Sequence record: LC727697.1
DNA length: 64,000 nt
Strand: one strand, 5' to 3'
Part shown: piece after piece, positions 8,381 through 64,000 of the stretch
Position numbering within the stretch: position 1 is the stretch's first letter
How the letters are laid out: every line of letters starts with the position of its first letter
Notes under the pieces: model-generated
The model's database searches: none
What the model was told of the DNA's origin: nothing
Seen by the model: only the letters and a program-made list of their open reading frames with translations
Translations under genes and position numbers: made by a program

Positions 8381-8398
8381 ACTTATACTTATCCTAAA

Positions 8399-13679: not shown

Positions 13680-13700
13680 AAGAACCTCTATAAAATGCTA

Positions 13701-27293: not shown

Positions 27294-30200
27294 ATGTCAC
27301 AAGACGTAAGACAATCTAATCTGTTCGCAGCGGAAGATTATAGAAAAATATATAAAAGTTTTAAGGACGTCGATTTCAAAGCATATGATTTTGATTCCTT
27401 AAAGACTGCGTTAGTTAATTATGTTCAAATTCATTATCCTGAAGATTTTAATGATTACATAGAAAGCTCTGAATTTATTGCTATTATAGAATTACTTGCA
27501 TATCTAGGAACTAGTCTTGCATTCAGAATGGATTTAAATTCTAGAGAAAACTTTATGGATACTGCTGAGCGTAGGGATAGCATTATACGTTTAGCTAGAA
27601 TGATAAACTATCAACCTAAACGAAATATACCTGCTAAAGGGTTATTTAAATTAATAGGTGTGCAAACGTCAGAACCAGTTACAGATTCTCAAGAAAGGAA
27701 TTTAAATAATAGAACTGTGTTTTGGAATGATCCAAACGATATAGATAGTTATGACAAGTTTATAACTATATTAAATGCGGCATTTGCTTCTACTAATCCA
27801 TTCGGTAGACCATTTAAAAGTGGAACAGTAGGTAATATACCTACTAGCTTATATCAATTAAACAACGTAAAAAGGGTAAACGTTGCATTTCCTATACCGA
27901 TAGTTGTTAATAATGTCTCCCTACCGTTTGAAGTAGTTAACTCAGATTTTGACGAAACATTTACGGAAAGACAACCCGATCCAGACGATGCGTTTCATGT
28001 TATATACAGGAACGATGGTCAGGGGTTAGATTCTGCAAACACAGGTTTCTTTTTGCAATTTAAACAAGGTACTCTTGCATTTAAAGATTTTGCATTCGAT
28101 TTTCCTGTTCAAAATAGAATTATAGATATAAATGATAGAAATATAAACGAAACTGATGTGTGGGTCCAAGAGATTAACGAAATTGGAACTGTTGAAGAAA
28201 AATGGACTAAGGTACCTAACGTTTCTGGCGGAACAAATATAATTTATAATAGTATTAACTTAGGTATAAGAAATATATTTGAAGTAGTTTCTAGAGTTAA
28301 TGATCAAATTTCTGTTAAATTCTCTGATGGAAATTTCGGTACTATTCCTACAGGTACATTTAGAGTATGGTATAGAGTTTCATCTAACACTACTTTTACT
28401 TTACGTCCGGAAGAAGCATCCGGGATGGAATTAGTAATACCGTATATAGGTGCGGATTCTCAACAATATGATCTTCGATTAATTTTTAGTTTAGAACAAA
28501 CTATATCTAATTCTTCGCCTACAGAAACAAACGATGAGATAAAAACCAGAGCACCGCAAGTATACTATACCCAAGATAGAATGGTAAACAACGAGGATTA
28601 TAATGTTTTCCCGTTAACGCAGGGTAGTTCTATTGCAAAAGTTCATGCTATCAATAGAACTCATTCTGGACATTCTAGATACATAGATATTAACGATCCC
28701 ACTGGATTTCATCAAAATTTAAATATTTTCGGCGAAGATGGTTCTATATACAATCAGAGTACTGTGCCTTCTACTACAGTAGCAATGGGTGATAAATTAG
28801 TTAGCGAAAATATAGTAGTTAGAAATAATTTACAGACATTTATCAGAAATCAAGATTTAATCAACTTTTATTGGAATAATTACCTAAGTGAGTATATAAG
28901 ATATAGACAAAACCCAACTCCTAACCCCATAAATACCTCTATTGTTCGTCCCGGAGTTCCTAATATATTTAGATACACTTCTACTCAAGCAAAGTGGGTA
29001 ACGTATCCGTCGTCTGATGCAACTAATACAGGATACTTAGTTAAAGGATCTACCAACTATATATATCCTACGAATTATAATAATAGACCAGAAGGGGAAT
29101 TTAGATTCCTTTCTGTCGGATCTAAAATTAAATTTACAAACGGTACAGAATATAAAGAAGTAACAGTTAAAAGTATTACTAACCCAGTGTCACAAGGGGA
29201 TGCAACTACAGATAATGAGTTTATTGCAACTAGATTAAACGCAAGTTTATTTGTATTTGATATAGAAATTCCAGCCAATTGGTATGTAGATAGTGTATAT
29301 CCTAGATATAAAACAACGTTTGATACAGAAGAAACTACAGATATAGCAAATCAACTATTTAGAAGAAATGAATTTGGATTAAAGTACGATATAGATGTAG
29401 ATCCAGAAGGTTCGTGGTTTATTGTATTGGGCGTACCCACTACAAATTTAGATAATTTTGAATTCGATTTATCTTTATCTCAACCTGCAGTTAGAAAAGA
29501 CTGGATGCTTGTTTTGACGTATTCTACCGAAACAGATAATTACACATTTTTATCAAGAGGAACAAAGTTTATATTTGAAACAAATGGTACCGTAGAATTT
29601 TACTACGATACTGACGAAACCGAATTTGATATAAACACCGGTTCTGCACAAAGAGATGAAATAGAAATATTAGGAATTAACACAGGTCCTACTATAGTAG
29701 AAAATTGGCAGTTTATCGGAAACGGTCAATGGCGTTTGGTTAACGGTATAGTTAGTTTAACATATCCCGACAACAAAATAATTTTAAAATACAGAGATAC
29801 TTTACCTAAAGAAATTCAGTATTGGCAAAACGGCATATTATTACCGGGTGCATTGCCAACCGGAGCTGCATCTGCTGGCGTTTTAGATGCAGAATATGTA
29901 GGGCAACAAGTTAACGATATTATACGAATATTTTATTCTAATCAAGGCCAATTGGGTAATTCTATTGTCTGGAATTCTTTCCAAACATTTATAGAATCTG
30001 ACGGCTATAGTGATCCCAGAAAAATAGTAGTAGTTCCTGCAGACAGAGATAGAGACGGTATACCAGATAATACTTTTATTTTTGAACAATTTGTTTCACC
30101 TACGGATTTAGTTTTTCACGAAAAAACCACAGATTACGACGGGTATGAATATAATAGATTATGGCAAGCATCTTGGTTAGATCTTCGCCAACAGAATCCT

Positions 30201-31259: not shown

Positions 31260-34200
31260 ATGGCAACATTAAAAACGTTTAACAAGTTACCTGGTATATT
31301 TAGAACAGATACCCAAAAAAGATTCTTTTTAGCTACATTTGAGCAACTATTTTCTAAAAAGAATGTAGAGGATATAACTGCTTACATAGGTAGAAGAGTT
31401 CCTGGTAGACATGATCCTATAAACGATTATTACTTAGCAGAACCTACTAAAGAACGGACTTGGTATCAGTTAGAAGCAACCTCGTATAGTATTGATTCTA
31501 CTACGTTAGATCAAACAAATATAATGTTTTACCAAGACTTGTTAAACAGGTTAAATTATTATGGTGCCAATACAAAGAATAATGACACTTTATTTTCTGG
31601 CGGATATTATTCTTTCGGTCCGCCGATAGATTTAGATAAATTTATAAATTTCCAAAATTATTATTGGATAGAAGATCGGCTGCCTGTTATTATGTTAACA
31701 GTAGAAAACGAAAGTGGTATAAACGCAGACGAATGGATAATAAACAATATAATAGGAAAAAAGAACGCCAGTATAACATTAGAAAACGGTAATACTATTC
31801 AGCTTTCTAACGGACTCAGAATACAATATACTAACTCGTCTTCATTTAATAGACCATTAACTGTAGAAGGTGTCGGAAAAGGTATTATTTTAGTAAAAGA
31901 TGAATCTCACTTAGTAGATACTGTTGGCTCTGTAGATTATATCACTATAGAACGCGGCTGCAGAGATGGCAACGCATGGTCCCGCACTAACAAATGGTAT
32001 CATAAATCTGTAATGGCAACTTCTGCCTCTGCAACCAATACATCTACGTATAACAACGCAGTTAAGGCAAGAAGACCTATTATAGAGTTTGATAGAGATA
32101 TAGAGTTATTTAAATCTGGAAATAATTACTTAGGTGAAGTTAATCTAGTAGCCGAGTCTGATAGTATTTCTAGTATATCAAATTCTGCATCATACACTAT
32201 TGATGGAAAACTATTAGAAGATCAAGATAAGTTAATTTTCTTATCTAATAGCACAATAACTTATCCAATTGTAGATACATTTATTGCAGATGCAGCGCCA
32301 TACAATATAATATTACGAAAACCATTTACTGATACAGATGATATATTTGTAATTGTAAAACGTGGTAACAAAATGTTTTACAATCCCGAATGGTATTCGT
32401 ACGAAGATGAATTAAACCAAATGAATTTCATTGCAGACACAAAAGGATTGCAATGGAATCCCATTTCGTATGATATAAACAATGTTAGTTTTGAAAACAT
32501 AACAAATGGCGTTGAATATAAATTTTATACACCATCTAGCGTAGGAACTATTAAGACTATAGATGTAGTTAACAGAGGAACATCTATAAGACAGCCGAGA
32601 ACTTCGTTTACATTTAATGTAGAAACATTAAATACACCTGTTGGTAAGAATAATAGCATTGTAACCATTACAGGAACTACCTTACCTACTAATTTAGCAT
32701 TTGATGTAATCATAAATGATAACATAGATGGGTTATTGCCTGGTGACCAAGTAGAAATAAATGTAAACAATAAAGTAAACATGTATAAGAAGCCTGCTGC
32801 TGAAGCAATAGAAGGCCCAGGCGCCAGAAGAACATTTTTATTTAATAATGATTTTACTTTTAATTTTACTCAACAAAATATAGGTAATCATATAATAGGT
32901 ATTCAAATAGATGCATATACAAGAGATGCAAACAATGATCCAGTATCGTATGACTACTTATATAATCCTGCAGATGATTTTGTTAGTTTTACAATAGAAC
33001 AAGATAATGCACTATTAGTAGAATTTAAAAATATAGTGCCCGACGATAGTATTGTTAAATTAATAGTAAGAGATAACGAAACTCTTACACTAAATGCAAC
33101 AGACTATATATGGAAAATAGTTAAAGTAGAACAGCCAGACAATACTGTAGTAAACAGTATAATCCCTGTTCCTAACAAATACACAAAAGTTGCTAAAGGA
33201 GATGTAGTATTAGTAACTGAAGGAGATACATTTGCAGGAGACATGTTCTATTATACTGGAGTACAATGGGAAAGGACTTATAATAGAAAAACAAATGCTA
33301 ACCAAGCTCCTTTATTTAATTTATATTATACCGATTTAGACTCTAATAACAATGCAATTTCGTTGGATAGTTTCCCGCAATCTACATTTGCTGGATCTAA
33401 GATTTTTTCGTATAAAATAAATGAAGAAAGTGCATACGACGATGAAATACTAGGATTTCCTATTGAAGTAAAAAACTTAGGTCAAATATCCGATATTGTG
33501 TTTAGACACGATCTTCACATGGATGTATTCCAATACTTTAACGGAAATGAATTCGAACCAATAAAAGGTTATTATTATTTTAAACAATGGAATTATACAA
33601 TATCTGGCTCTAATCCCACATATGAGCATACCTGGGTGCCATTTGACGGAAATTCTAAACAAAGAGTAATAGATAGATTTGTAGTATCGGATTCTTCGCA
33701 AAAAGAATACGAACTAAGCGTAACACCCGAAGAATTGGAACCGGGTATATTTGACATAAGAGTAGAATACAATAAATCTACCCTTGCACAGAATGTGGAA
33801 TTTACTATAGTCCTAGATAACGACGGGAAACCTACTAAAACTATAAAAATATTGAGATCACTCTCTGCAACTGATGTTATTCAAACATACACCTATTCTA
33901 AAGAAGCTTTGCCAGATAACGCACTAGGGTATTATCAAATTCCACAACAATTAGAGAATAACCCTAACAACTTAGAAGTAAATGAATACTCGTCGAATGA
34001 GTTAACAAACCATTTTGTTAGTATAATGACTAATCAAATAGGATTTAAAGGAGATCCTTATAGTTCTAATAATAATTACAGAGATACTGCTGAAGACAAA
34101 TCTTTAGGTACATTTATTCTACAAAACAGAAGTCCATTGTTAAAAACAATGCTTGTATCTTCTAGCGAAGAATTAAATATAAATTCTGCTATAAGATTTG

Positions 34201-37200: not shown

Positions 37201-40200
37201 GTACAGGTAAAGTTTCTGAAGTTAGAGTATTAAGTTCAGAAATGATTTATACTACTACACCTATAATAGTATTTGCTACACCCGAAGAAGCTAATGCTGG
37301 CTTAGATCCTAATGTAGATGCATATTTGCAAGGCAATCAATTAAATAGCCCCAATAATAGTATTGTAGAGGAAATTAGAGCAACAGGACAGGTTGTATTA
37401 AAAAATGGAAGAATTGATTCTGTTACTATAACTGAACCGGGATACGGTTATATAAAACCTCCCAAAATAGCAATAATTTATAACCAGACTGTCATAACTA
37501 TCGATAAGTTAATTTCTATTATAAAAAATAAAATAGACGAAGATAGTCCATATGATATGATTATTACTATAGATAGCGATGACAACGAGCGTTGGCTATC
37601 TAAACCTAATGGCAGAATGCCAGTAATTGTAGGTAATGAGATTAAGTATAATGATAGATTAGTTCCTACTACAAAACAGCTAGACGGAAATATACCTACA
37701 GCTGGGTATGTAAACACCAAAGATGTTACTCATCAAATACTATATCCTAAAAATATATTTACATTGTGGGAAAGAAAAGATGTTTCTAAACCGAGTCTAA
37801 CTAGTTACATTTGGGTAGGTAATGCCTCGTCAGTAGGTATCGACTGGGGTGTATTTGTTATATACTCTGGACTAACACCTGCTACTAATGCGCTATATCC
37901 GTATTGTGTTATAAACAATATGGTATATTCGTATACTGTAGATTCGGACGGTGTTATAGATGCAATATTTGATAAAGAAGGTAAACAAGTAACTAATGTA
38001 CCTATACAGAATCCTTTATTCTTTAAAAATGTGAGATTTAAAAATAATGCAACTGTTAACGTAACATCAGGTAAAGTATGGATTGATAGTATAAATTCAG
38101 ATAATGACTGGGCTGTTGCTGTTGTTTCCGGATCTACTATAACAAATATTCGTTCTAGACAAAATTTAGTAGATAGTAAATTATTTGAAAATGCATACTT
38201 CTATGATAAAGACACTAAACAAACTATAGATTTTCTACCAGTTTACGATCCAGTTAAAGGATTAATACCCGGAACTGCTGATAGAAACATTCACTATAAA
38301 TCAGAAATAGATCCTACTACATATTCTGTTTCGGCTAATTCTGCAAATATAGACGACGAATTAGCATTTACAGATTCTGAAGTGGGGAGATTATGGTGGG
38401 ATACATCTACTTGCAGGTATTTACAATATGAACAACCCGGAAAACTAGATGGATCTGAAACCAAAGAACAAATTCTAGAATATAGAAGAGATAATTGGGG
38501 TAAACTATTCCCGGGTTCAGTAATAAATGTCTACGAATGGGTTTCAAGTCCGTTTACGCCTGATTTATACAACGGCACTGGCACACCGAAATCGTTAACA
38601 GATTATGTTGTCAGGTATGACACTAATTCTGCAGGCCAAGCAACACCTATATATTATTATTGGGTAAAAGGTAAACAAGAAATACCTAATAATATAAAAA
38701 GTAGAAATATGACTTCTACTAGTGTAGAGAATCTTATAACTAATCCTAAATCACAGGGTTATAAATGGTTCTCGTTTATAGGAAATAATTCGTTTGTATT
38801 TTCTAATGTATCAAAAACTATTAATGGAAAAACACCAGTATTCCAGGTTAATTATAGATACACTAAAAATATAAACGAGAAACATACAGAATGGAAACTA
38901 CTAAGGGAAGGCGACGAAGTTTCGGTTATCCCTACATATCTATGGAATAGATTAGTAGATAGTTTAGTTGGATATAACATAAACGGAGATATAGTTCCTG
39001 ACCCTACGTTGTCTGAATTTAGTAAATTGGGTATAAAAGTAAGACCTAGACAATCTATGATAGATAATAGAATGGCAGCAAGAAAAGTATTTGTTCAAAA
39101 TGCAAACAGTCTTCTGTCTACTATATCTATAAAAGATTTTAATCCTGCATGGGCTGACGGATTAGCGTCTTCTGTTCTTTGGAGATATGTAAACTGGTAT
39201 GCCGACGGATTTAATCAATTTAATACAACACCTGTAAAACAGGTGTCTACTGTAGGTGAATTAACGGGACTTGTAGGAAAACTAAAAGACGGCGATATAG
39301 TTAAATTAGTAAGACCTGAAGAATTTACACTTTATCAATACAGTAATCAAAATTTTACGCTAATTGGACGTCAGAACAGTGCTATTCAGTTGTTGCCTGC
39401 AATCTATACAGTATCTAGATCATATACAAATGATAATGCACTGCGAGAACTAATATTTGCTCTTTATAACAATGTATTTAAAGACGCAAACTTAGTAATG
39501 AGGAACTTAGTGTTCTTTGCGTTAATAAATTATATTTTATCTGAGCAACAAAACTTAGATTGGGTATTCAAGACTACTTATATAAAAGTTAATCAAGAAG
39601 GAGAAAGTTTAACTCAGCAAGAATCGGTTACAACTGATCCTATACAGAGTTTTATTTCTTATATAAAAGAAATTAAACCGTATACTACAAAAATAAGAGA
39701 CTTAGGGGTAAAATATAATGTTCCTATGGATATCGCGAACGGAACAGCGTATGACTATGATTCATTATATGATTGGCCAGACGATCACGAGGGAGAACAA
39801 GCACCATTCCGTCCGATAGAAGTACCCAGATTATTTGATATAAATTCGTTATACGATCGAGTACAATGCGGTTACATAACTAAACCGAATTATATAGACT
39901 TAGGCGACCAAACATTTATCGGTACCGGTGGCCAAGTAGTTCTTATAGCAAATACTCCTAATGATGAATTTATAGCATTAGATGGAATTTCTCAATATCA
40001 ATTAGGTGCTAATAAAGATATTTCTAGAATAACATCTGTAACAATAAATGGGCAAGAAATAGAAGGTTACACATTCACTACAATATTAAATGCAACATTT
40101 ATAATACTTCCTTCTACTCCTGATGCAGGTGATGTAATAATAGTAAACTACACCGATATAAAATCTGTTTGGAAAATTAAGGTAGATGGAAAAACTATTA

Positions 40201-53346: not shown

Positions 53347-53604
53347 GGTGGATTTCAAAATCTACCCGCGTAACAATCCACCACTCACCGAATGTCAACC
53401 GTCTCAGCTTACAGCCACCCGGTGTTGGAATTCATCACTTTCAAAATTTGTCAACTATATTTTTCTATAACAATTTTCAGTATAATAGAATTATCCTATA
53501 CCTGCTATTGTCAAGAAAATATTTTTATTAATCCCTCCCAGTTAATAGAATTGTTCTATATAGTATACAACTAACATCATACACTATATAGAGCAACCAT
53601 TATA

Positions 53605-53901
53605 TTACTTATTATCGAATGTCGGAAACATTGAATACCAAACTGATATCAACCTAACACAATCTATCATAGTTCGGTTGGAATAACACTCAGTATCATA
53701 CAACGGGTAATTACTGCCCATAGTATAACACATAACTGATCCGGTGTTATTTCCAACATATCTGATAGTACCGAAAGCAGTATCGGCAATAACTACTACC
53801 AATTCTTCGAGGTTATCAGAAGACGGTTGAATAGTACTCTTAATGTGGTACAGGGACAGAAGTTCTTTTACTGCACTGAGGAAAAAATGTTCGCAATTCA
53901 T
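53605..53901 (-). CDS. Hypothetical protein (probable start MNCEHFF)
   Basis: AGGAG RBS upstream of the ATG at 53901. Confidence 0.6.
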   Translation of the reverse strand: MNCEHFFLSAVKELLSLYHIKSTIQPSSDNLEELVVVIADTAFGTIRYVGNNTGSVMCYTMGSNYPLYDTECYSNRTMIDCVRLISVWYSMFPTFDNK

Positions 53902-53902
53902 T

Positions 53903-54007
53903 TTAGTTCTCCTGCTTGCCTGTGTTTTGAAACTTAACTTCATTATTGGAAAGATAATGACCAGCTTCTATGTTATATAGTTTCTTTATTAGTTCTGCGT
54001 ATGTCAT
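53903..54007 (-). CDS. 34-aa ORF MTYAELIKKLYNIEAGHYLSNNEVKFQNTGKQEN
   Basis: GAGGA RBS upstream of the ATG at 54007. Confidence 0.4.
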   Translation of the reverse strand: MTYAELIKKLYNIEAGHYLSNNEVKFQNTGKQEN

Positions 54008-54041
54008 TATCTTATCCTCAGTAAGATCCAGTGGGATTGGA

Positions 54042-54206
54042 TTACTTACTGTGATGTTCTCGGATGCACTTGGATTCGTCGTGCAGATTGCGGGCTTGTT
54101 CTGCCCAGGGGTGACCTGCAAAACAGAATCCGTGCCATTTGCTGCAAAGCATCCGGCGAAGTAACATGCAACGTTCGTTTTGAAGTCTGGCCAGTGCAGC
54201 ATTCAT
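54042..54206 (-). CDS. 54-aa Cys/His-rich ORF MNAALARLQNERCMLLRRMLCSKWHGFCFAGHPWAEQARNLHDESKCIREHHSK
   Basis: GGAGATAA RBS before the ATG. Lies in a different frame from track ORF 53903-54202. Confidence 0.6.
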   Translation of the reverse strand: MNAALARLQNERCMLLRRMLCSKWHGFCFAGHPWAEQARNLHDESKCIREHHSK

Positions 54207-54238
54207 GAACTTATCTCCAGGGCGTAGGGTTGTAGAGG

Positions 54239-54439
54239 TTACTCGCTAGCCACAAGCTGCACAAGCTGGCGCTGTGTGCCGTCGGGGCGGTTGCGAACGA
54301 TGCAGAACAGGGTAGCGGTGCGTCCGCAGCTACGATGCAATTCAGCTTCCTGCATCAACCAGCGCACCATGACCGCATTGTAGGCCGGGCGACGGTTTGC
54401 ATCAATTGCAATTTGCTTGACATCTACGATCTGGCTCAT
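54239..54439 (-). CDS. Hypothetical small high-GC protein
   Basis: GGAG RBS and its own promoter. Confidence 0.65.
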   Translation of the reverse strand: MSQIVDVKQIAIDANRRPAYNAVMVRWLMQEAELHRSCGRTATLFCIVRNRPDGTQRQLVQLVASE

Positions 54440-54478
54440 GGTTGCGCCCTCCGGGGCTTGCTGTGTTGCGTTGTAATT

Positions 54479-54507
54479 ATTATGCGCCCTTCGCTCGGCT
54501 ACGTCAA
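54479..54507 (-). promoter_or_regulatory. Early sigma70 promoter TTGACG-17-CATAAT
   Basis: Shares TTGACGTAG and CATAATAATTACAAC with 55890-55918. Confidence 0.75.
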
Positions 54508-54580
54508 CTTTTATTTATTGTTCCGCCGGGCGGTCAGCTAGCACCTTCCGGGCAATGTTTGCTCGCGGTGGCCAGTTGAG

Positions 54581-54829
54581 TTATTTCGTACCCTCCATCT
54601 TTGTGCAACTGTGTTTGGAAAAGCCCACGGCGATACCGCTCGTATCGCCAGAGCTACCGAAGTTCCTTGCCCGGATGTTCTTCACAACCGTTTCTCGCTC
54701 ACGCTTGAGCGCCTCGCAGTCTTCCTTGCTAAGGTCACGAACCACAATGGTGTCTGCTGTCGTCGAACGAGCGTAGGTGTTGTTGTTGAAGACAATGGTG
54801 GACAACAAGAGGTAGCTTGCAATGCTCAT
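54581..54829 (-). CDS. Hypothetical protein with a hydrophobic N-terminus (start MSIASY)
   Basis: ATGA-coupled to an upstream 19-aa ORF at 54826-54885. Confidence 0.55.
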   Translation of the reverse strand: MSIASYLLLSTIVFNNNTYARSTTADTIVVRDLSKEDCEALKRERETVVKNIRARNFGSSGDTSGIAVGFSKHSCTKMEGTK

Positions 54830-54906
54830 GGCTGTTCCATAGTCGCGCACTGGCGCAAACAATGCTTGGAGAGGTGCAGGTTCATCGTGTTATCTCCGGG
54901 GCTATA

Positions 54907-55398
54907 TTACTGAAGGATGAGAATCTTGCGAACGGGGCGGACCAACCAGGCGCTGCTCTTGATAGCGACACTAGCCTCGCCGTCGCCGAAGTGCATGCGG
55001 AAGGCGCCGCATGCGGAGTACTGCGAACTCGACCAGTACCAGCGATCTGCGAAACCAGACAGCTCGCCTGCTTGCTTGGCGGAGAACAGAAGAGCCAGTT
55101 CCAGAACAGAAGGAATGAATACGCCTTCTCCGATCTCCATAGCTTGCTTGGCAATCGGGCTGCCAGCTTCAGCCATGGCGACCGTGTTCGAAGCTCCGTC
55201 TCGGTAGCTGGCGGTGCCGTTCACATCCTGCCCATACTCGCCCCATTCTCCAGTGAACTCGGCGCTTTTGCCGAGATCGACGTAGGCGTATTCCTTGCCA
55301 TTGAGCCATTGGCGGGCAAAGAAGGTTCCATCAGCCAGGGGCTGGCCGATTTCGGGAAGGTCACTCGGATGAATCGAATCGGGGATGGTAGTGCTCAT
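54907..55398 (-). CDS. DUF1566 (Lcl C-terminal-like) domain protein
   Basis: IPSVLEL, WYWSSSQY and VRPVR motifs; high GC. Confidence 0.75.
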   Translation of the reverse strand: MSTTIPDSIHPSDLPEIGQPLADGTFFARQWLNGKEYAYVDLGKSAEFTGEWGEYGQDVNGTASYRDGASNTVAMAEAGSPIAKQAMEIGEGVFIPSVLELALLFSAKQAGELSGFADRWYWSSSQYSACGAFRMHFGDGEASVAIKSSAWLVRPVRKILILQ

Positions 55399-55431
55399 GG
55401 TTGGTTTCCTTGTCGGGTTGTGCGTGGTGGG

Positions 55432-55641
55432 TTATTGTGCGAACAGGGCGTGCAGGGCGGCTTCTTCGGACTTGCGCATTTCCAGGCACTGGGCATTTGC
55501 AATTGCCAGTTCCAAGGCTTCACACAATTCCCTGGCGTGGGCATGCAACTCGCTAGCGACGCGTCCGGTGTAGCGCAGTTTTTCGAGTTGGTTCATGCGC
55601 ATGCGTTGCGCTACGAGCATGTCTTTCAGTTGTTCGATCAT
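55432..55641 (-). CDS. Hypothetical helical protein
   Basis: AAGGA RBS; high-GC codon usage. Confidence 0.65.
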   Translation of the reverse strand: MIEQLKDMLVAQRMRMNQLEKLRYTGRVASELHAHARELCEALELAIANAQCLEMRKSEEAALHALFAQ

Positions 55642-55657
55642 GATCTTTTCCTTTAGT

Positions 55658-55682
55658 AAAGCCCCGCCTGGGGCGGGGCTTT
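55658..55682 (-). terminator. Terminator
   Basis: AAAGCCCCGCC-TGG-GGCGGGGCTTT hairpin. Confidence 0.75.
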
Positions 55683-55690
55683 AGTTGGTG

Positions 55691-55840
55691 TTAGGCTACG
55701 ATATCATAGCCGAGCCAAACCTGGGTGAGGACTTGGCCATGCCGGAAGATAACTTCGTAGCAGATATCGTTATCACTATCGCTCCAAATCCATGCGTAGG
55801 ACTCGCCGGCTTTGCTGTTCATGCATTGGATGTTGCACAT
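55691..55840 (-). CDS. 49-aa ORF MCNIQCMNSKAGESYAWIWSDSDNDICYEVIFRHGQVLTQVWLGYDIVA
   Basis: AGGAGG RBS, bracketed by a promoter and a terminator. Confidence 0.7.
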   Translation of the reverse strand: MCNIQCMNSKAGESYAWIWSDSDNDICYEVIFRHGQVLTQVWLGYDIVA

Positions 55841-55889
55841 AGTTTTGCCCTCCTGGGCTGGTTGCGTTGTGTTGCACTGTGTTGTAATT

Positions 55890-55918
55890 ATTATGTGTCC
55901 AATGCTAGTCTACGTCAA
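55890..55918 (-). promoter_or_regulatory. Early sigma70 promoter TTGACG-17-CATAAT
   Basis: Near-consensus with a 17-nt spacer. Confidence 0.75.
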
Positions 55919-55948
55919 CCTTTTTATCTGCAGGCGAGGCAGAGGATG

Positions 55949-56218
55949 TCAAAACTTGACACCGTGCTCGATATACCACTTAGCGGCATCCTCTGTCACA
56001 AAATCGCAACAGGCCAAAATTGTTTCGACGCTGCGGAGCCAACAATCGACAAAAGCGTCTGTATAACGGTTGGTTCCGTCTTCGTGGACTTTTACCCCGT
56101 CGGTGTGGGCGGCATTGTCCAGAGCTTCAAAATTGACTCGATGAACAATATCCATTGTGCTGCCGAAGACAGCTATAGGGAGGTCTTCGATAAGGCTAAG
56201 CAGACTACGCGCATCCAT
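55949..56218 (-). CDS. Hypothetical protein
   Basis: ORF track; same strand as its neighbours. Confidence 0.5.
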   Translation of the reverse strand: MDARSLLSLIEDLPIAVFGSTMDIVHRVNFEALDNAAHTDGVKVHEDGTNRYTDAFVDCWLRSVETILACCDFVTEDAAKWYIEHGVKF

Positions 56219-56305
56219 CCCTTTGTACTCCGTATGTTCTGTATGTATACAGTATGCATCCAGTGAGTACCTTTGTCTACCAAAATATGAAAATTAATAT
56301 GCTTA

Positions 56306-56521
56306 TTAGTTTCTACCGGTTTTGATACCGATGATAAAAGAAGTTCTCATATTAGTTGGTAAGGAATTGAAATATCGAAAGAAGTCAGTTAGGATAGCTT
56401 TGCCTTCTTTTATTTGAGTGCCTGCTTTTAATCCTTCAGTAAAAGCAATTTCTTTTGTCATGATAATGTACTCATGATTGTGTATATGTTTTAGCATACA
56501 TGTATATTTGTAAATATGCAA
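56306..56521 (-). CDS. Hypothetical protein (true start probably internal, MTKEIAF)
   Basis: ORF track; GAG upstream of the internal ATG. Confidence 0.45.
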   Translation of the reverse strand: MHIYKYTCMLKHIHNHEYIIMTKEIAFTEGLKAGTQIKEGKAILTDFFRYFNSLPTNMRTSFIIGIKTGRN

Positions 56522-56525
56522 CTGG

Positions 56526-56849
56526 CTATTGTTTGATCTTAGATAAATGCTTTATTGTAGATTCATAGTCTTTAAACGAAGTAGGTATGTAGCTAGTCTT
56601 ATATTCACTAGCATTATATAATGACATTAGTAATAAGGTAACCGCTTGATTAATATTGTATGCTGTTTTTGATTTTATACTGAATACATGAATGTAACTA
56701 GTTGGATCATCATTAATTCCAGGCAGAATATTCCAACTAGTTATAGTTGCATAAGGTTTTACTACCTGGCGCATTTGAGTAATAAATGCTGCAAATGCGC
56801 CAGGACGGGGTGATTCATTACATATAATGCATTTAATTACTTCAATCAT
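56526..56849 (-). CDS. Hypothetical protein
   Basis: ORF track. Confidence 0.6.
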   Translation of the reverse strand: MIEVIKCIICNESPRPGAFAAFITQMRQVVKPYATITSWNILPGINDDPTSYIHVFSIKSKTAYNINQAVTLLLMSLYNASEYKTSYIPTSFKDYESTIKHLSKIKQ

Positions 56850-57033
56850 ATATGTTTTACCATTATTATTGAATATAATTATAAGAAATAAAAAACACTA
56901 TATGTATAATAACACATAGTGTTTTAGATACAACTGGAATTACTTCTTAGGTACTTTTTAGTATTCAAAGTTCATTGTAGTAAGCCATTTCATCCAAGTT
57001 AGTAATGTTATTGGAATGGATGGTCTGATCTGT

Positions 57034-57058
57034 GCAAATAAGAATAATTTGTATTTGC
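57034..57058. promoter_or_regulatory. Fur-box-like palindrome GCAAATAAGAAT-A-ATTTGTATTTGC
   Basis: Member of a repeated intergenic palindrome family (see findings). Confidence 0.55.
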
Positions 57059-57076
57059 ATTTGCATTTGACTTAAT

Positions 57077-57106
57077 AAAAAGAAAGGGGCATTGCCCCTT
57101 TCTTTT
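57077..57106 (-). terminator. Terminator
   Basis: AAAGAAAGGGGCA-T-TGCCCCTTTCTTT. Confidence 0.8.
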
Positions 57107-57114
57107 GTCACTAA

Positions 57115-57348
57115 CTAAACTGTTTCACCGAAATCAATAATTACACCTAATTCTAAATTATTTTTTCGGATATGTTTTGATAGGAGTGTTTGTGCATCGA
57201 GACGCCCAAACGCATGTAATGTAATAGTTCTTTTTTTGAACAAACTTTCTGTTGCTTTATTCCGTGCAGTGTACTGAATGACAAATTTAGTTGGAATTGC
57301 CTTTGTTTTTGGCATTGGGCGTGGATTTGTATTCAGTTTGCGGTACAT
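57115..57348 (-). CDS. Hypothetical basic protein
   Basis: AGGAG RBS; TTGACA-17-TATGCT promoter at 57376-57404. Confidence 0.7.
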   Translation of the reverse strand: MYRKLNTNPRPMPKTKAIPTKFVIQYTARNKATESLFKKRTITLHAFGRLDAQTLLSKHIRKNNLELGVIIDFGETV

Positions 57349-57420
57349 GTATATCTACTCCTTGCTGTTTTATACAGCATAATATGATCTTATGTACATG
57401 TCAATCATTTTTATTATATT

Positions 57421-57909
57421 TCAACTAATAAAATATGGTTTAGGTGTCTTTGTATATGTAGCATAAATGGGTCTGTTAGATCTCGATGCCCATTCTTTAA
57501 ATTTGTCATTTAAATATAACTGATATGAATGTGTTACATTACCTGTTTTAAATTCGTCTGGCATAACTAAGACAAACTCTGTTCTTTCTATATTAGGGAG
57601 TTTTGGTATAGTTTTTAATGACGAAAGGTGAATTTTAGTTGCATGTTGTTTGTCAAATCTATATTCAAATTCATTTATAAGACTTGTAAGAAGTTCATAA
57701 GTCCATTCATAGTTTTTTGAACTTTCTCTAATCCAAACGGCACATGGATGATTTTTATGAGTAGGTTTATATGCAGGAGTATATCCGTTTATTATATAAT
57801 GAGTAGTGCTTAACAATTGTGCTGTTTCTACTATCATCTTTCTTAGATGAACATCACAATGATGTTTGGCACATACATAAGGATTTGTGTCAGTCACAAA
57901 TATATTCAA
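57421..57909 (-). CDS. denV: Pyrimidine-dimer DNA glycosylase family (T4 endonuclease V-like)
   Basis: MNIF...HCDVHLRKMIVETAQLLS and YKPTHKNHPCAVWIRES..NYEW motifs. Confidence 0.75.
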   Translation of the reverse strand: MNIFVTDTNPYVCAKHHCDVHLRKMIVETAQLLSTTHYIINGYTPAYKPTHKNHPCAVWIRESSKNYEWTYELLTSLINEFEYRFDKQHATKIHLSSLKTIPKLPNIERTEFVLVMPDEFKTGNVTHSYQLYLNDKFKEWASRSNRPIYATYTKTPKPYFIS

Positions 57910-58065
57910 TTTATATTACCTACAATGTTTAATGTGTAAAATACAGTATTCAGTATGATTTGTAAATAAGAGTTATTATTATGTCAGAATAGATGCAAAT
58001 AAGAATATTTGTTATTAACAGTCATAGAGAAAGCACCTTTCGGTGCTTTCTCGGTGTAGTCCGGA

Positions 58066-58503
58066 TTATGCTTCCGGCTGGGCTTCTTTGCGCTTCTTCG
58101 AGCTGCCTTTCTTCGCCGGGGCAGCGTCGCCGGACTGGACTGCGTGGTCGGCGACCTGGACTACTGCCTTGACCAGGTTGTGGGCTTGCTCTTCCTTGCT
58201 CAGCGTGCTGGCCGGCATCTCGGCGCCTTCTTTGCCGTCGGTCAGGATGAACAGGATTGCTTGTTCCATCGCCCGGGCGATCCGGATCGCGCTGAACACG
58301 CCTTTCTGTTCGAGGACGATGTCCTTGCCGTTGATGTTGGCGTCGATCTTCGCCGACCAGGTGCGCTGGGTTTTGGTCTTGTAGAACGCTTCGCTGCTGC
58401 CTACTTCGACGCCGTTCAGCAGCAGGGCTTGCCGGTGCCCTTCCAGGTTGCGGCGGACCAGTTTGATTGCGGATTGCTCGACGGTAACGGTTGCTTTGGT
58501 CAT
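58066..58503 (-). CDS. Hypothetical high-GC early protein in its own cassette
   Basis: AGGAG RBS, TTGTAC-18-TATACT promoter at 58569-58598, and a GAAAGCACC/GGTGCTTTC terminator at 58027-58052. Confidence 0.75.
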   Translation of the reverse strand: MTKATVTVEQSAIKLVRRNLEGHRQALLLNGVEVGSSEAFYKTKTQRTWSAKIDANINGKDIVLEQKGVFSAIRIARAMEQAILFILTDGKEGAEMPASTLSKEEQAHNLVKAVVQVADHAVQSGDAAPAKKGSSKKRKEAQPEA

Positions 58504-58670
58504 GATTTGGAACTCCTAGCTGTATTTGGGTTTGTCTATGAAGCGCTGTTTGCTTGCTTCATGTGTGTAGTATATGCAGATCTGGCCACCATGTACAATT
58601 GAACGTTTTAATGGACTTTGTAGATTCTAATAGATTTTATCTAACGAAGATTAGGTACAGTAGCCTGCTG

Positions 58671-58695
58671 GATAATAAGAATTATTCGCATTTGC
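58671..58695. promoter_or_regulatory. Fur-box-like palindrome GATAATAAGAAT-T-ATTCGCATTTGC
   Basis: 14/19 match to the E. coli Fur consensus GATAATGATAATCATTATC. Confidence 0.55.
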
Positions 58696-58835
58696 ATTTG
58701 CTTGCAAATAATTAAAATTAAATAAGGAACGGAACTATAGGTGCTAAGCCAAACATTAACAATGAAATAATAATGAATATCAGTAGTATGCCAACACTGA
58801 CAACTGAAGTTAATAAAAGGGATTTTAATATAAAT

Positions 58836-59144
58836 TCAATCATGTAACTTAAATATCCTTCTACACAGGTAATATTCAATACATTCATTTATATCAGGTG
58901 ATGTAACTCTAAAACCTGATACTACATATTCTTTTTTCGATAAATTTAATTCTAATTCTAATATGTTCTTTTTAGTATTTAATCCAGAAACAATTAATCG
59001 TGTGTTTGGTACCATATGTTCTTTAAAATTAAGAAACTTTGCTACAGCATGGAAGTCGTTACTTGTAATGTAACGTTCTATATCACAAATATTAGTCTCA
59101 ACGCCTGTGTTGACTATTCCGTGGACTACATATACATTATACAT
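58836..59144 (-). CDS. Hypothetical protein
   Basis: Starts 1 nt after the upstream stop. Confidence 0.6.
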   Translation of the reverse strand: MYNVYVVHGIVNTGVETNICDIERYITSNDFHAVAKFLNFKEHMVPNTRLIVSGLNTKKNILELELNLSKKEYVVSGFRVTSPDINECIEYYLCRRIFKLHD

Positions 59145-59145
59145 A

Positions 59146-59517
59146 CTATTTCTTATATATTTCTAAAGTATTACCAACCCTTTCCATACAACCGTTAAAT
59201 ATGGCTAGAGGGATAATCTTTCTTTCTTCAGTAGATGAAAACTCATATACGTTATCAATTAATTTTGAAATATTTGCTTGAGCCTGCAAGAACGCAAGCC
59301 ATTTACTATTATTATTCTTATATAAATTAGATACAATATCCATATGAGATGCAATTTGTATTGCATTCATATGTTCATTTACTACCATATCGACATGAAT
59401 CTTAGATAATTCCAGAAGTGTAAGGCATGTTTCGTTAGTTATCTTAACTTCAGTAATAGATTCTGCAGAAACTAGTGTAGACAAAGACAATGCAATAGAA
59501 GCAATAACAAATTTCAT
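59146..59517 (-). CDS. Predicted exported protein
   Basis: Sec-type signal peptide MKFVIASIALSLSTLVSA. Confidence 0.6.
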   Translation of the reverse strand: MKFVIASIALSLSTLVSAESITEVKITNETCLTLLELSKIHVDMVVNEHMNAIQIASHMDIVSNLYKNNNSKWLAFLQAQANISKLIDNVYEFSSTEERKIIPLAIFNGCMERVGNTLEIYKK

Positions 59518-59597
59518 AATTAGCCTAATACGGGAAGTTATACACTAAGCTATTATATTTTTAATTATTATTTTTTGTCAAATGAATAATATTGGTC

Positions 59598-59755
59598 AAA
59601 AAAAAGCTGCTCCGGGCAAGCCCTTTGCAGCTCAAGAACGGTACACCCAAACCAGTGTACCAAGAACCAAGTCAGGAGCATTAGCTCAACACATACTTGG
59701 TAGCAGGAGTTACAACTAACAGCAAAACAAATTAATACGTCTTGCTGCAAACTTG
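59598..59755 (-). ncRNA. Candidate ~160-nt structured small RNA
   Basis: TTGCAT-17-TATTAT promoter (59761-59789), stacked hairpins, U-tract terminator, and no RBS-led ORF. Confidence 0.55.
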
Positions 59756-59790
59756 AGTACATAATACATATACGTTACAGCTAATGCAAG

Positions 59791-60171
59791 TTATTTTTTA
59801 AAATCAATATAAGTGACGTTTTCTTCTTTCTTTATTACATGTTTCTTTTCTTCACAATCAATTGCATTAGAAATTTGACCGTGAAGTTCGTTAACATACT
59901 TCTCATCAAGAACAATGTACATGATGATCCCGGCGGGACTAATAATCCGGTGACTATGGCTTATATAGTTTCCCAAATAGGCCAATACTTCGATTTCTGC
60001 ACGTAATCCAATTTTAACTTCTGCTATACTTGCATCAATTTTGTTTTTGATCCATTCTTTCAGTTGATCTTGAGCAGACACAAAATTGATATGAGCTTTA
60101 AGATATCGAACATAGTCGAACTTATCGCCTTCTTTGTCATATGCAGTTGCGACTAATGCTATGAGTGCCAT
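59791..60171 (-). CDS. Hypothetical protein
   Basis: AGGAG RBS; TTGACA-17-CATTAT promoter at 60198-60226. Confidence 0.7.
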   Translation of the reverse strand: MALIALVATAYDKEGDKFDYVRYLKAHINFVSAQDQLKEWIKNKIDASIAEVKIGLRAEIEVLAYLGNYISHSHRIISPAGIIMYIVLDEKYVNELHGQISNAIDCEEKKHVIKKEENVTYIDFKK

Positions 60172-60354
60172 AATGGTATCTCCTGCTTTGTGTGTGCATA
60201 ATGTAGCCTACAGCAAGGAATGTCAAGAGGAAAATTCTACAAAAAATGCTTGCATGCAGATACAAATATGCTATTATCTTTATACAGAGACCAGTAATAG
60301 GGCGGGGGAGACAATCACCCAGGCTGCCTAAAATTTAGGCAGATAGGTAGGAAT

Positions 60355-60379
60355 GCAAATGCGAATAATTCTTATTTGC
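60355..60379. promoter_or_regulatory. Fur-box-like palindrome GCAAATGCGAAT-A-ATTCTTATTTGC between divergent promoters
   Basis: Near-perfect 12-1-12 inverted repeat. Confidence 0.6.
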
Positions 60380-60524
60380 AAAACATGAAGTCGTAGAAAA
60401 TGTTATAACAGAATAGATGCTAATAATATTTTATTTGAAAGAAAATGGAAGAAAATTCTTGCATTAGCACACGAATAGCGTATACTACACATAACAAAGC
60501 AAAACAACGCAGGAGTAACAGAAA

Positions 60525-60764
60525 ATGATGCAACTACGCGCACATAACGCTAACAAGGAAAATTTCAATTACTGCGTGTTTATCGAAGCGTTCCAGGAAG
60601 GTAGTCAAATTGTTGCAAATGTGGTACGCAACTATGAAGACGGGACTACTGAAATACTGTATAGCTTCAAAGGTCCCAACAGCCTGAACGTAAGAACGCA
60701 AATGCGCAAAAAGAAAGTACGTATGATGCAAGTCAAAAGTGGCAAGCATTTGTTGGGACTATAA
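60525..60764 (+). CDS. Hypothetical protein; the only plus-strand gene supported in the accessory region
   Basis: AGGAG RBS, TTGCAT-16-TATACT promoter at 60459-60486, and a terminator at 60764-60790. Confidence 0.7.
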   Translation: MMQLRAHNANKENFNYCVFIEAFQEGSQIVANVVRNYEDGTTEILYSFKGPNSLNVRTQMRKKKVRMMQVKSGKHLLGL

Positions 60765-60807
60765 GAAAAGGGGCAATGCCCCTTTTCTTATGACTATAAT
60801 TTCTGCA

Positions 60808-60990
60808 TTATAATACTTCTTCAAATTCTTCGTCGTAGTCGACTGTCACATAAGATGTGAGTTTAGCCAAAGTATTTACTAGTGTAATATCTATTGCACA
60901 CCGACCTTTAGAAATTTTCTGGATAGTCATTTTCATGCCATTGTAGAAAACAACATCACCTACAGCTAACTCAGTTGCTTTGGTTTGCAT
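60808..60990 (-). CDS. Small beta-rich (SH3/KOW-like) hypothetical protein
   Basis: LAVGDVV motif, AGGAG RBS, and TTGCAT-17-TAGTAT promoter at 61021-61049. Confidence 0.65.
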   Translation of the reverse strand: MQTKATELAVGDVVFYNGMKMTIQKISKGRCAIDITLVNTLAKLTSYVTVDYDEEFEEVL

Positions 60991-61120
60991 GTATAACGCT
61001 CCTGACTTTATTTTTTTAATATACTAGCACAGTGCCGCTAGCTATGCAACTAGAATTTGCTTTTATTTTAAAAGTAAACAAGAATTTATTATAATTGCAA
61101 ATAAGAATTATTATTATATT

Positions 61121-61172
61121 TCCAATTATCAAATCCAATTATCAAATCCAATTATCAAATCCAATTATCAAT
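61121..61172. repeat. Four tandem 13-mers TCCAATTATCAAA
   Basis: Three exact copies plus one with a final mismatch. Confidence 0.9.
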
Positions 61173-61455
61173 CGGTCATTACACTTACTGATAGAATAGT
61201 AGATGGCATTTCATCTTTCTTAAACTTGATAGGCACAATATCTACATAAACAAGTTTTGAACCTAATGTGTGTTCTAATGGTTTGTATATACGGGCAAAT
61301 ACCAAATTACGTTTTGTAGAACTATTTTCACATTCTATCTTATAATGGAAGTCTACTCTTTTATACTGAGTTTTTACTACAGTACGTAAAGAGACTATCT
61401 TAATTTTATTAGATAAGATAGTCTTCGAAACAATATTTTTTAAATCATCTTCCAT
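61168..61455 (-). CDS. Hypothetical protein
   Basis: ORF track. Confidence 0.6.
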   Translation of the reverse strand: MEDDLKNIVSKTILSNKIKIVSLRTVVKTQYKRVDFHYKIECENSSTKRNLVFARIYKPLEHTLGSKLVYVDIVPIKFKKDEMPSTILSVSVMTD

Positions 61456-61466
61456 ATTATATTATA

Positions 61467-61874
61467 TTAATTGTCTTTTTCAACACAAGTAAGGAAATAA
61501 AGTTCACACTCTTCTTTCCAGTTAGATAAAAACGTCGGTTTAAAAACACCCAAAATATTTGTGCTAGGGAGAATGTCTTTATATTGATCAACGTAACTAT
61601 TGACATCTTTGAGTTCGATGTCAATGCGCCCGTCCATAACCATTTTTAATGCTGCCGATTTAACGCATAGTGGACTATGAGGATTATTTACTATCCTATT
61701 TGCGCATGCCAATTCTGCGTCAGAAATAATACGCTTTATTTGGCTACACACATTTATGTCACTTTCGAGCCATATTTGTTGAGTGTAGCAAAGGTTGTTA
61801 TAAACAGGATCTATTACAAACAATTTGCATTTGAACATGGTTAACACTCCTGTAGTAATATAATTTATAAACAC
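61467..61874 (-). CDS. Hypothetical protein (true start probably MFKCKLF)
   Basis: AGGAG RBS before the internal ATG. Confidence 0.6.
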   Translation of the reverse strand: MFINYITTGVLTMFKCKLFVIDPVYNNLCYTQQIWLESDINVCSQIKRIISDAELACANRIVNNPHSPLCVKSAALKMVMDGRIDIELKDVNSYVDQYKDILPSTNILGVFKPTFLSNWKEECELYFLTCVEKDN

Positions 61875-62056
61875 ATTGTGCTATATTCTACATATAGGTG
61901 TCAAGTTAATTTTATTCTTGCTTTTGTAATATACTTGTGTTATAAGTGCGGGATCGTGCAAATAAGAATTATTCTAATTTTAATTAAATAAAATTAATTC
62001 TTATTTATAAGTATATTATACATAAAAGGAAAGGGGAATTAATCCCCTTTCCTTTA

Positions 62057-62362
62057 TTATGCTATTTGATAACTTACTTCATTACCGTTAGTAATCTTTA
62101 CACAAACATCAATGTCAACCATTCCTGTGTAGTCTGGTTCCTGAATAGTAATGAAAATATACATGCTGTTTTGTTCCAGGCTGCAAGTTGGATCACCCTT
62201 ACATTGCCATTCAGCATTACCTGCATTAACAGCATTGGATACCTGTTCTAAAGTAACACTACCCGTAGCCTTCCAAACATCAATGCCATATGCCCCTTCA
62301 GCATAAATGAATGATTTAAAGGTTGGAAAAATCTCTAACAACCGCTTCAATTCTGCTGACAT
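62057..62362 (-). CDS. Hypothetical protein
   Basis: AGGAG RBS, TTGCAA-17-TATTAT promoter at 62394-62422, and a terminator at about 62024-62057. Confidence 0.7.
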   Translation of the reverse strand: MSAELKRLLEIFPTFKSFIYAEGAYGIDVWKATGSVTLEQVSNAVNAGNAEWQCKGDPTCSLEQNSMYIFITIQEPDYTGMVDIDVCVKITNGNEVSYQIA

Positions 62363-62511
62363 GTTATATCTCCTGTTTTGTGTTGCTGTACATATAATAT
62401 TGTCATTGCCTTAGCATTGCAACATATAAAATGTAACAAGCAAACAAGACTTAATCTTATCCGGTATACACATACACTATGTTAGGAGAAAAATCAAGTG
62501 AATATTTGTTC

Positions 62512-62571
62512 TAAGATTAGTTCTTATTTGCGTGGCGGGGATATTATCATTGCAAATAAGAACTAATCTTA
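62512..62571. repeat. Perfect 20-bp inverted repeat TAAGATTAGTTCTTATTTGC / GCAAATAAGAACTAATCTTA
   Basis: Arms at 62512-62531 and 62552-62571 with a 20-nt spacer. Confidence 0.9.
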
Positions 62572-62804
62572 ACAAATGCATATTAAAAAGGGCTTACAAA
62601 TTGCAAGCTCTTTGTGTTACGCTGCAGGGTTATTTTTTCAGAATTATTCTTATTCAGTTTCTTTGTTGTTAATAAGAACTTATTATCAGGCCTAATCAAG
62701 AATGCGTCTTATTTGCATTGTGCTTTTACCACAACCGTAATAGTTCTTATTTGCACAGAAATTGCAGACAAAAGAAAAGGGCTTGCGCCCCTTCCTTTTT
62801 TGTG

Positions 62805-63125
62805 CTAGCTGTTAGCTTCCAGAAAGTCCATTACACCCTTTGCAGTGCCGTTGTCAAAGAAAAGGTGCGTGTCCATGCGTTCCACAACAAATCCGTAGTA
62901 GTCCCAGCCTACTATCCATCCTGCATACTTGTCAACCAATTTGTAGCAGGGATAGTCTGAATCCTCGTAGTGCGGCAGTTCCTGGGACAGCTGGACTAAC
63001 ACATAGTCTATGCCGTTGTCAACAAAACTTTGTAGGAGTTCCTCGTAGTGATTTTTAATGGAAACTGTAGAAACGTTGTCCTCTGGGACTAGTGCGTCCC
63101 AGTTAAAACCTTTAAAGTCAACCAT
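62805..63125 (-). CDS. Hypothetical acidic protein
   Basis: AGGA RBS, TTGCGT-16-TAGTAT promoter at 63168-63195, and a terminator at about 62770-62800. Confidence 0.7.
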   Translation of the reverse strand: MVDFKGFNWDALVPEDNVSTVSIKNHYEELLQSFVDNGIDYVLVQLSQELPHYEDSDYPCYKLVDKYAGWIVGWDYYGFVVERMDTHLFFDNGTAKGVMDFLEANS

Positions 63126-63343
63126 TTTCTTATCCTGCTATTAATGTTTATAGGTACTGCAATACACATACTAGCACCTGTGTAGCATAACGCAAGCTTT
63201 TTCTTTTTGTGAACAATTCTTATCACCCAGCCGTATCAAGAATGCCTCTTGTTTGCATTCGCATCTCACTGCCCTGTGCAAATAAGAATAATTTGCATTT
63301 ACACTTAGGACATAAAAGGAAAGGGGCAGTTGCCCCCTTTCCT

Positions 63344-63646
63344 TTAGTAATTGCGCTGGTACCCGGCAACTACACTGACGTCTCTGCCTTTAATGTAGAT
63401 CTTGCGTGCGCCGCCGAACCAGTGTCCACAACAGTCTCTCGAGCAGCTACAGCTTTGCTCCATGAGCTGGTACACTGCCTTACGGAGTGCCCAACTGCTA
63501 GCACGAACACCACGGGGCAGACGCAGTCGAACAACGTCGATAGTCTCGATATCGATCGGACTGTTCGGATTGCGGACAGTGTGTTTACTGACAACCTTGC
63601 GGGCAGTCACAACACGCCCGTTGATCCACAGATGAACGAGATTCAT
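63344..63646 (-). CDS. Hypothetical protein with a CSCSRDCCGH motif
   Basis: AGGAG RBS; terminator at about 63313-63345. Confidence 0.7.
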   Translation of the reverse strand: MNLVHLWINGRVVTARKVVSKHTVRNPNSPIDIETIDVVRLRLPRGVRASSWALRKAVYQLMEQSCSCSRDCCGHWFGGARKIYIKGRDVSVVAGYQRNY

Positions 63647-63657
63647 GGTGTCTCTCC

Positions 63658-63906
63658 TTAGTTGCTATCTTCGGCAATGACGTACAAAGTAACGCCGCAG
63701 CCCGGAGGAACTAGGCGCCACTGCACGTCGTACGCTCTCAGTGCGTCGTAATGGCTAGCAAACACGGGAGCGTTGGGACCAACAACCTTAACCTTGCCCA
63801 TCATTGCACAGCGCTTGATTGCGTGCAACAAGGCGCTGTCGAGGTCTACAGATGTAAACACTTCGGCGATGTTGCCGATGCTGTTAACATGCAATACTTT
63901 AGCCAT
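63658..63906 (-). CDS. Hypothetical protein
   Basis: AGGAG RBS; TTGCAT-16-TAGTAT promoter at 63947-63974. Confidence 0.7.
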   Translation of the reverse strand: MAKVLHVNSIGNIAEVFTSVDLDSALLHAIKRCAMMGKVKVVGPNAPVFASHYDALRAYDVQWRLVPPGCGVTLYVIAEDSN

Positions 63907-64000
63907 TGTCTGTTGCTCCTGCTAGTTATGTGTTACTGCTAAACACATACTAACATCTTACCGCAGTAATGCAACAGGAGATTGACTTGTGCAAATGCAA

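Follow-up and report, generated by a model that had tools for sequence, protein, structure and literature searches.

A candidate non-coding RNA between two early genes in the terminal repeat of Pseudomonas phage phi30-2 and other Wroclawvirus genomes

What occupies the 273-nt gap between two small early genes of Pseudomonas phage phi30-2: a regulatory RNA with a promoter of its own, the tail of the upstream mRNA, or a small protein gene? An earlier note on this DNA had proposed a phage sRNA with two anti-Shine-Dalgarno (anti-SD) motifs that, by analogy with the Fur-controlled PrrF RNAs of Pseudomonas, represses host mRNAs or the AGGAG-led phage early genes around it. The window analyzed here is the final 64 kb (64,000 nucleotides) of phi30-2 (LC727697.1), a Wroclawvirus and relative of PA5oct. 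The 1.1 kb around the candidate RNA is 100% identical to phi30-2 (LC727697.1) and 97-98.6% identical to nine further Wroclawvirus genomes, and the ten-genome set comprises phi30-2, PA5oct, MIJ3, Paride, Ettore, Deifobo, Cassandra, Callisto, PAC2 and phi30-3. In PA5oct, whose plus strand corresponds to the minus strand of the window, the counterpart of the candidate RNA lies at about 32,700-32,860 (~32702-32859), within the 39-kb terminal repeat. The genes of this repeat are highly transcribed early in infection, by the host RNA polymerase (PMC7318152). PA5oct has been put forward as a model jumbo phage, and Paride and other relatives are candidates for therapy. The terminal repeat of early genes in these phages has hardly been characterised. 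If a conserved regulatory RNA is encoded there, control of the early genes would gain a post-transcriptional layer. The data presented here indicate that the stretch is probably a small regulatory RNA or a regulatory mRNA tail and not a small protein.

Anatomy and transcription of the unit

All sequence features that had been listed for this locus were found, on the minus strand at 59789-59598, including the two CUCCUG motifs at 59709-59704 and 59678-59673. The unit occupies the gap between a 126-aa gene (60171..59791) on one side and a 123-aa gene (59517..59146) on the other, and its elements are the following:

60198..60226, minus strand: promoter of the upstream gene, TTGACA-17-CATTAT, 10/12 consensus match, conserved
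59791..60171, minus strand: upstream early gene, 126 aa, homologue of PA5oct EST35_0095; its transcript may end in the candidate RNA
59761..59789, minus strand: promoter-like pair read from the sequence, TTGCAT (59789-59784), 17-nt spacer, TATTAT (59766-59761)
59568..59762, minus strand: overlapping 64-aa ORF, ATG (59762-59760) inside the -10 box, without SD, 29 nt past the upstream stop codon
59598..59755, minus strand: body of the candidate RNA, ~158 nt; 5' end placed near 59754 from the -10 box, 3' end at the U8 tract
59719..59748, minus strand: hairpin 1 (predicted fold), 11 bp including 3 G.U pairs, loop UAUUAAUU
59702..59712, minus strand: single-stranded linker AACUCCUGCUA with seed 1, CUCCUGCU (59709-59702; RNA nt 47-54), unpaired probability 0.5-0.95
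59666..59701, minus strand: hairpin 2, CCAAGU/ACUUGG around GAGC-UAAU-GCUC, with the second CUCCUG (59678-59673) partly paired inside
59640..59661, minus strand: hairpin 3 (predicted fold), GGUACACU/GGUGUACC, 8 bp (GGUACAC/GUGUACC)
59598..59633, minus strand: intrinsic terminator, GAGCUGC...GCAGCUU, a 7-bp stem with a 3x3 internal loop and GGG-CUUG-CCC, followed by U8; -15.5 kcal/mol
59552..59581, minus strand: promoter of the downstream gene (59517..59146), a perfect TTGACA-18-TATAAT (12/12) that marks the end of the unit

The candidate RNA folds with a minimum free energy (MFE) of -56.9 kcal/mol (z -3.9), a value that none of 200 shuffles equalled, and after adjustment for GC its MFE is among the top 0.3% of 5108 windows taken from both strands. 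The plus strand reaches only -44.6 kcal/mol, 12 kcal/mol worse than the minus strand, because five pairs of the minus-strand RNA are G.U pairs that have no equivalent on the other strand. The terminator is conserved and ends in a U tail, a feature expected of base-pairing sRNAs. Two CUCCUG motifs in 158 nt have a probability of ~6e-4 per segment, with ~0.24 such cases expected per window, so that the doubled motif moderately exceeds chance. Hairpin 1 (59748-59719) and the terminator (59633-59604) have GCAGC/GCUGC arms in common; judged from the sequence, these could in principle pair with each other in an alternative fold, in competition with the terminator. The strongest-folding place of the window on both strands is elsewhere, at 15451-15733, where two imperfect palindromes are found (15454-15507 and 15657-15697).

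Contigs from PA5oct infection RNA-seq (2020 study) cover the candidate RNA in six runs, in which the contig reads are PA5oct-type by sequence and 95-99% like the window. All sampled words of the RNA body are present in the RNA contigs of runs X2 and X4. Two contigs, 59414-60869 in X2 and 59623-59979 in X4, join the upstream gene to the candidate RNA across the putative promoter, although one contig does not prove that the RNA was one molecule. In X4, contig ends joined to adapter fall within the terminator loop, at 59620 and 59623. The region is transcribed, and in the contigs it is continuous with the RNA of the upstream gene. Since the contigs run through from this gene, the candidate RNA may be its 3'UTR, and the position between the upstream stop codon and the terminator, together with the bridging contigs, is what a 3'UTR-derived RNA co-transcribed with this gene would show.

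The promoter that had been assigned to the RNA itself is only putative. TTGCAT-17-TATTAT matches the consensus at 8/12 positions, with only 3/6 in the -35 box, and lies below the threshold of the promoter scan. This is chance level: the minus strand of the window holds 1653 sites with at least 8/12 matches, and sites that combine TTGnnn with a 5/6 -10 box occur at 1.1 per kb. In Callisto the -35 box reads TTGCGT instead of TTGCAT and is weaker still. The pair is unlike both the phage's own consensus, TTGAC and TATAATA (PMC7318152), and the neighbouring strong promoters. These observations, and the contigs that bridge the promoter, speak against the reading in which the RNA is an independent trans-acting sRNA that starts near 59754 from its own promoter, would be bound by Hfq via the U8 tail and would repress host and/or phage mRNAs through its CUCCU seeds. 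Its anatomy does fit (a promoter-like pair, a length of ~155 nt and a terminator ending in U8), and its seed is accessible. Summed over 59672-59838, contig depth exceeds that of the upstream gene by a factor of 10 in X1 and 7 in X3 and shows no excess in X2 and X4; this measure is a poor one and strandless. We regard an independent sRNA as possible, although on the unlikely side.

The perfect promoter of the downstream gene is placed directly after the terminator of the candidate RNA, and RNA depth in the infection RNA-seq contigs is very high over this gene (59517..59146). [quoted passage not shown] The read-through contigs are consistent with such a role, and so are the fact that the authors of the RNA-seq study called no ncRNA here and the target statistics given below, which are not significant. 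However, neighbouring early units manage with a terminator immediately after the stop codon (for example 62056-62025 and 60792-60760), and in six other Pseudomonas phages 3'UTRs are mostly shorter than 100 nt (PMC10914365). [quoted passage not shown] Two CUCCUG motifs in 31 nt are likewise unusual, and the constraint described in the next section spans all 157 nt, including the linker. A purely passive tail thus seems rather unlikely to us.

Constraint across ten genomes and the overlapping ORF

The body of the candidate RNA has 6 variable columns out of 157 in the ten genomes (3.8%). At third codon positions of the two flanking genes 32 of 251 columns vary (12.7%; Fisher p 0.0025 against the RNA body), and the adjacent intergenic stretch, which holds promoter and 5'UTR, has 9 variable columns out of 80. 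The candidate RNA therefore evolves slower than the neighbouring silent sites. All 45 base pairs are kept in each of the ten genomes, as every change is either unpaired or converts G.U to A-U; the only variable pair in hairpin 1 is such a G.U to A-U change, in Deifobo. The linker with seed 1 is invariant in 10/10 genomes. Compensatory changes or covariation were not seen among the ten genomes, which at 97-100% identity give little statistical power. No relatives beyond Wroclawvirus were found with both flanking proteins in IMG/VR, the upstream protein has no relatives in metagenome contigs and only Wroclawvirus ones in 5.8 billion proteins, and RNA pattern searches of viral, metagenome and genome collections gave 0 matches.

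The same stretch carries the 64-aa ORF, which is annotated as a hypothetical protein of 55, 56 or 64 aa in Paride, Deifobo, PAC2, Cassandra and Ettore. That its start lies in the -10 box and that it lacks a ribosome-binding site, as had been remarked, is borne out by the sequence. If the annotations of these five relatives were right, a gene for a small protein (55-64 aa) could account for the constraint on the sequence and for the ATG-started ORF that is open in all ten genomes. Such a gene would have to be translated without an SD from an ATG within a -10 box, at a distance of 29 nt from the stop codon of the upstream gene. Furthermore, the changes read in the ORF frame are 1 synonymous and 3 non-synonymous (few events, so that the power is weak), while the variable sites of the true upstream gene (126 aa) are distributed 0/1/13 over the three codon positions. 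A CAA-to-TAA stop gain drops eight codons in four genomes, two of which carry the CDS annotation, and Ettore has a frameshift in a T run. The ORF has no match in Pfam or PHROG, and in the PA5oct annotation, which was curated with RNA-seq, no CDS is called at this place. The earlier note had named a translated leaderless peptide, conserved at the protein rather than the structure level, as one of the observations that would speak against an sRNA; neither the substitution pattern nor the length of the ORF is protein-like. We consider a protein gene here very improbable, and from its sequence the ORF is most likely spurious and not a gene. If so, a spurious protein annotation in five deposited genomes would be corrected.

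Pairing of the exposed seed with ribosome-binding sites

Seed 1, CUCCUGCU, is situated in the only long single-stranded linker of the RNA, where opening it is predicted to cost 0.5 kcal/mol. The second CUCCUG is buried in a hairpin, and opening RNA nt 73-87 costs 9.2 kcal/mol. Every base of seed 1 is complementary to AGCAGGAG, the octamer around the SD of three early genes, one of which is the RNA's own upstream gene. The sites considered here are:

60180..60187, minus strand: AGCAGGAG, SD context of the upstream gene, conserved in ten genomes; duplex with seed 1 -18.6 kcal/mol
63916..63923, minus strand: AGCAGGAG at the SD of an 82-aa early gene (63906..63658); 9 bp with seed 1, -18.4 kcal/mol
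53909..53916, minus strand: AGCAGGAG at the SD of a 98-aa early gene (53901..53605); duplex -18.8 kcal/mol
60994..61008, minus strand: ribosome site of a 60-aa gene (60990..60808); uninterrupted 15-bp complementarity to RNA nt 73-87, restricted to phi30-2

The repeat of PA5oct holds 4 copies of AGCAGGAG against 0.46 expected, and all three sense copies are SDs. Among the AGGAG-led genes of this repeat (PA5oct 1-40000; window 53600-64000) a C precedes the motif at position -1 in 10 of 20 (p 0.002). Pairing with the 3' end of 16S rRNA does not explain this C. The longest match, to the ribosome site of the 60-aa gene, was rejected as a target, since it is specific to phi30-2; it involves the buried second motif. 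In the nine other genomes the duplex of this site with RNA nt 73-87 contains two G.U pairs and a mismatch. The CAGGAG SD of this gene is flanked by T and C in phi30-2 only and by A and T in the nine relatives, and both flank changes in phi30-2 raise the complementarity to RNA nt 73-87, turning an interrupted duplex into a continuous one.

In the fold of the putative 595-nt mRNA, the SD of the upstream gene pairs with seed 1 with a probability of 0.92-0.997, and the same SD-seed pairing appears in the mRNA folds of PA5oct, Ettore and Paride (P 0.94-0.99). In a control with shuffled 3'UTRs (n=45) the SD is paired with a mean probability of 0.57 and 2/45 reach 0.9. Because of this control the pairing of the 5' and 3' ends in cis loses most of its weight. 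In the wider comparison, the RNA shows no overall enrichment of 8-mers complementary to the 103 annotated ribosome sites (9 versus 5.1 +/- 2.5, P 0.095), and genomic 158-mers have a mean of 8.3 8-mer matches to ribosome sites. For a bare anti-SD pentamer, ~2.5 eight-base matches were estimated among 20 AGGAG sites, where 4 are observed. Extended complementarity to ribosome sites is about that of any CUCCU-bearing RNA, or little above it. A ranking of targets by whole-length duplexfold produced unrealistically long duplexes and was set aside. Of the repressor of AGGAG-led phage early genes that had been suggested, what stands is an exposed seed 1 that complements three SDs; the second motif is buried and the enrichment over controls is not significant. 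An anti-SD role is a plausible and reasonable hypothesis and not a finding.

Taken together, we place at about an even chance the reading that 59755-59598 (minus strand) is a functional non-coding RNA, a 3'-end species of the upstream unit whose seed pairs with three early SDs. The segment has four conserved hairpins, the last being the intrinsic terminator, and belongs to the early region of the terminal repeat. An RNA of ~155-190 nt would accumulate from the transcription unit of the upstream gene, and the short species might arise via a weak internal promoter, or through processing or greater stability. The exposed CUCCUGCU would then pair with AGCAGGAG at three SDs, that of its own gene and those of two further early genes, and this pairing, in cis and/or in trans, may lower the translation of the three genes as infection proceeds. 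If the self-targeting by an anti-SD is true, the locus would be a simple, testable case of a lytic phage that times its own early genes by RNA.

A more specific version holds that the 3'-end RNA of the early transcript is an anti-SD element tuned to the extended motif (AG)CAGGAG of phage early genes, with damping in cis and trans as the RNA accumulates. We judge this version distinctly unlikely. In phage T4, early mRNAs are shut off by the protein endoribonuclease RegB, which acts via GGAG ribosome sites. The tuned element, if true, would be an RNA counterpart of such RegB-type early shut-off. The likeness could only be a functional analogy, as RegB is a nuclease and the candidate RNA would pair.

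Known systems and the surrounding early region

The candidate RNA has no match among 4227 Rfam families, at gathering or at permissive thresholds, and neither a tRNA nor a tmRNA was found. No paralogue of it exists in the window or in ncRNA001/002 of PA5oct. The supposed analogy with PrrF could not be upheld: the Rfam PrrF model (RF00444) scores 14.3 bits against a gathering threshold of 90 (E = 8), and this at 59478-59581, off the RNA body. The link to Fur fails as well, as the best Fur-box match is 12/19, which 20% of background windows equal. With PrrF and other Hfq-dependent sRNAs the candidate RNA shares its size, a terminator with U tail and a pyrimidine-rich single-stranded seed; it differs from them in the missing model match, the missing Fur box and a promoter of its own that is only putative. 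Of the sRNA originally proposed, there stands a stretch that behaves like a constrained, structured and transcribed non-coding RNA; its own promoter is putative and the PrrF/Fur analogy fails.

In Staphylococcus aureus, an anti-SD motif in the 3'UTR of the icaR mRNA pairs with the SD of the same mRNA. The resemblance lies in a long 3'UTR with a C/U-rich motif complementary to the mRNA's own ribosome-binding site; for the candidate RNA the predicted P of this pairing is 0.99. However, the shuffled-3'UTR control is weak here, and icaR is a host gene while the candidate RNA belongs to a phage.

In their hand curation of the genome, the authors of the PA5oct RNA-seq study listed four ncRNAs, none of them at this locus (PMC7318152). 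These four, ncRNA001-004, neither lie at the same locus nor show sequence similarity to the candidate RNA. The closest in setting are ncRNA001 and ncRNA002 (8263-8498 and 21951-22401; candidate RNA ~32702-32859), which come from the same genus and the same terminal repeat of early genes and are transcribed without a plausible ORF (Lood et al. 2020, PMC7318152). In contrast to the candidate RNA, which is unannotated, they were defined by a very high read share; they have no sequence similarity to it and are without CUCCUG. A second likeness is found in ncRNA1 and ncRNA2 of phage PAK_P3 (PMC10914365), which are short structured RNAs at the 3' end of an upstream transcript with which they share the terminator. 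Their ends were mapped and Northern blots were made, and no TSS was found (PMC10914365), whereas the ends of the candidate RNA are those inferred here; a relation in sequence between the PAK_P3 RNAs and the candidate RNA is not to be expected. The candidate is credible as a previously unannotated phage ncRNA, either embedded in a 3'UTR or independent, with putative targeting.

Several observations concern the early region around the unit. The minus-strand intergenic unit at 61875-62056 has a strong terminator right after the stop codon (AAAGGAAAGGGGAUUAAUUCCCCUUUCCUUUU), then a ~45-nt AT-rich palindrome and a TTGACA promoter, with a fold z of -7.2. The stretch 60525-60764 is annotated differently among relatives, as a plus-strand 79-aa ORF in PA5oct, phi30-2, phi30-3, MIJ3, Callisto and Ettore and as a minus-strand 216-nt ORF instead in Paride, Deifobo, PAC2 and Cassandra; a hairpin at 60760-60792 resembles a bidirectional terminator. 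Against a background of ~0.30 GC, GC-rich islands (0.49-0.58) are found at 54200-56200, 58000-58600 and 63400-63800, and these may have been acquired from a high-GC source. One of them contains a 145-aa ORF (58066-58503, minus strand) with very high RNA depth and no Pfam match, and PA5oct has a 24-nt insertion after window position 58121. The 105 small early genes in the terminal repeat of PA5oct are separated in ~30 places by intergenic gaps that measure 150-980 nt (12809-13721, 29138-30121 and 37572-38555 among others). An ncRNA is annotated in just two of these gaps, and further unannotated RNAs or small genes are likely to be present in them.
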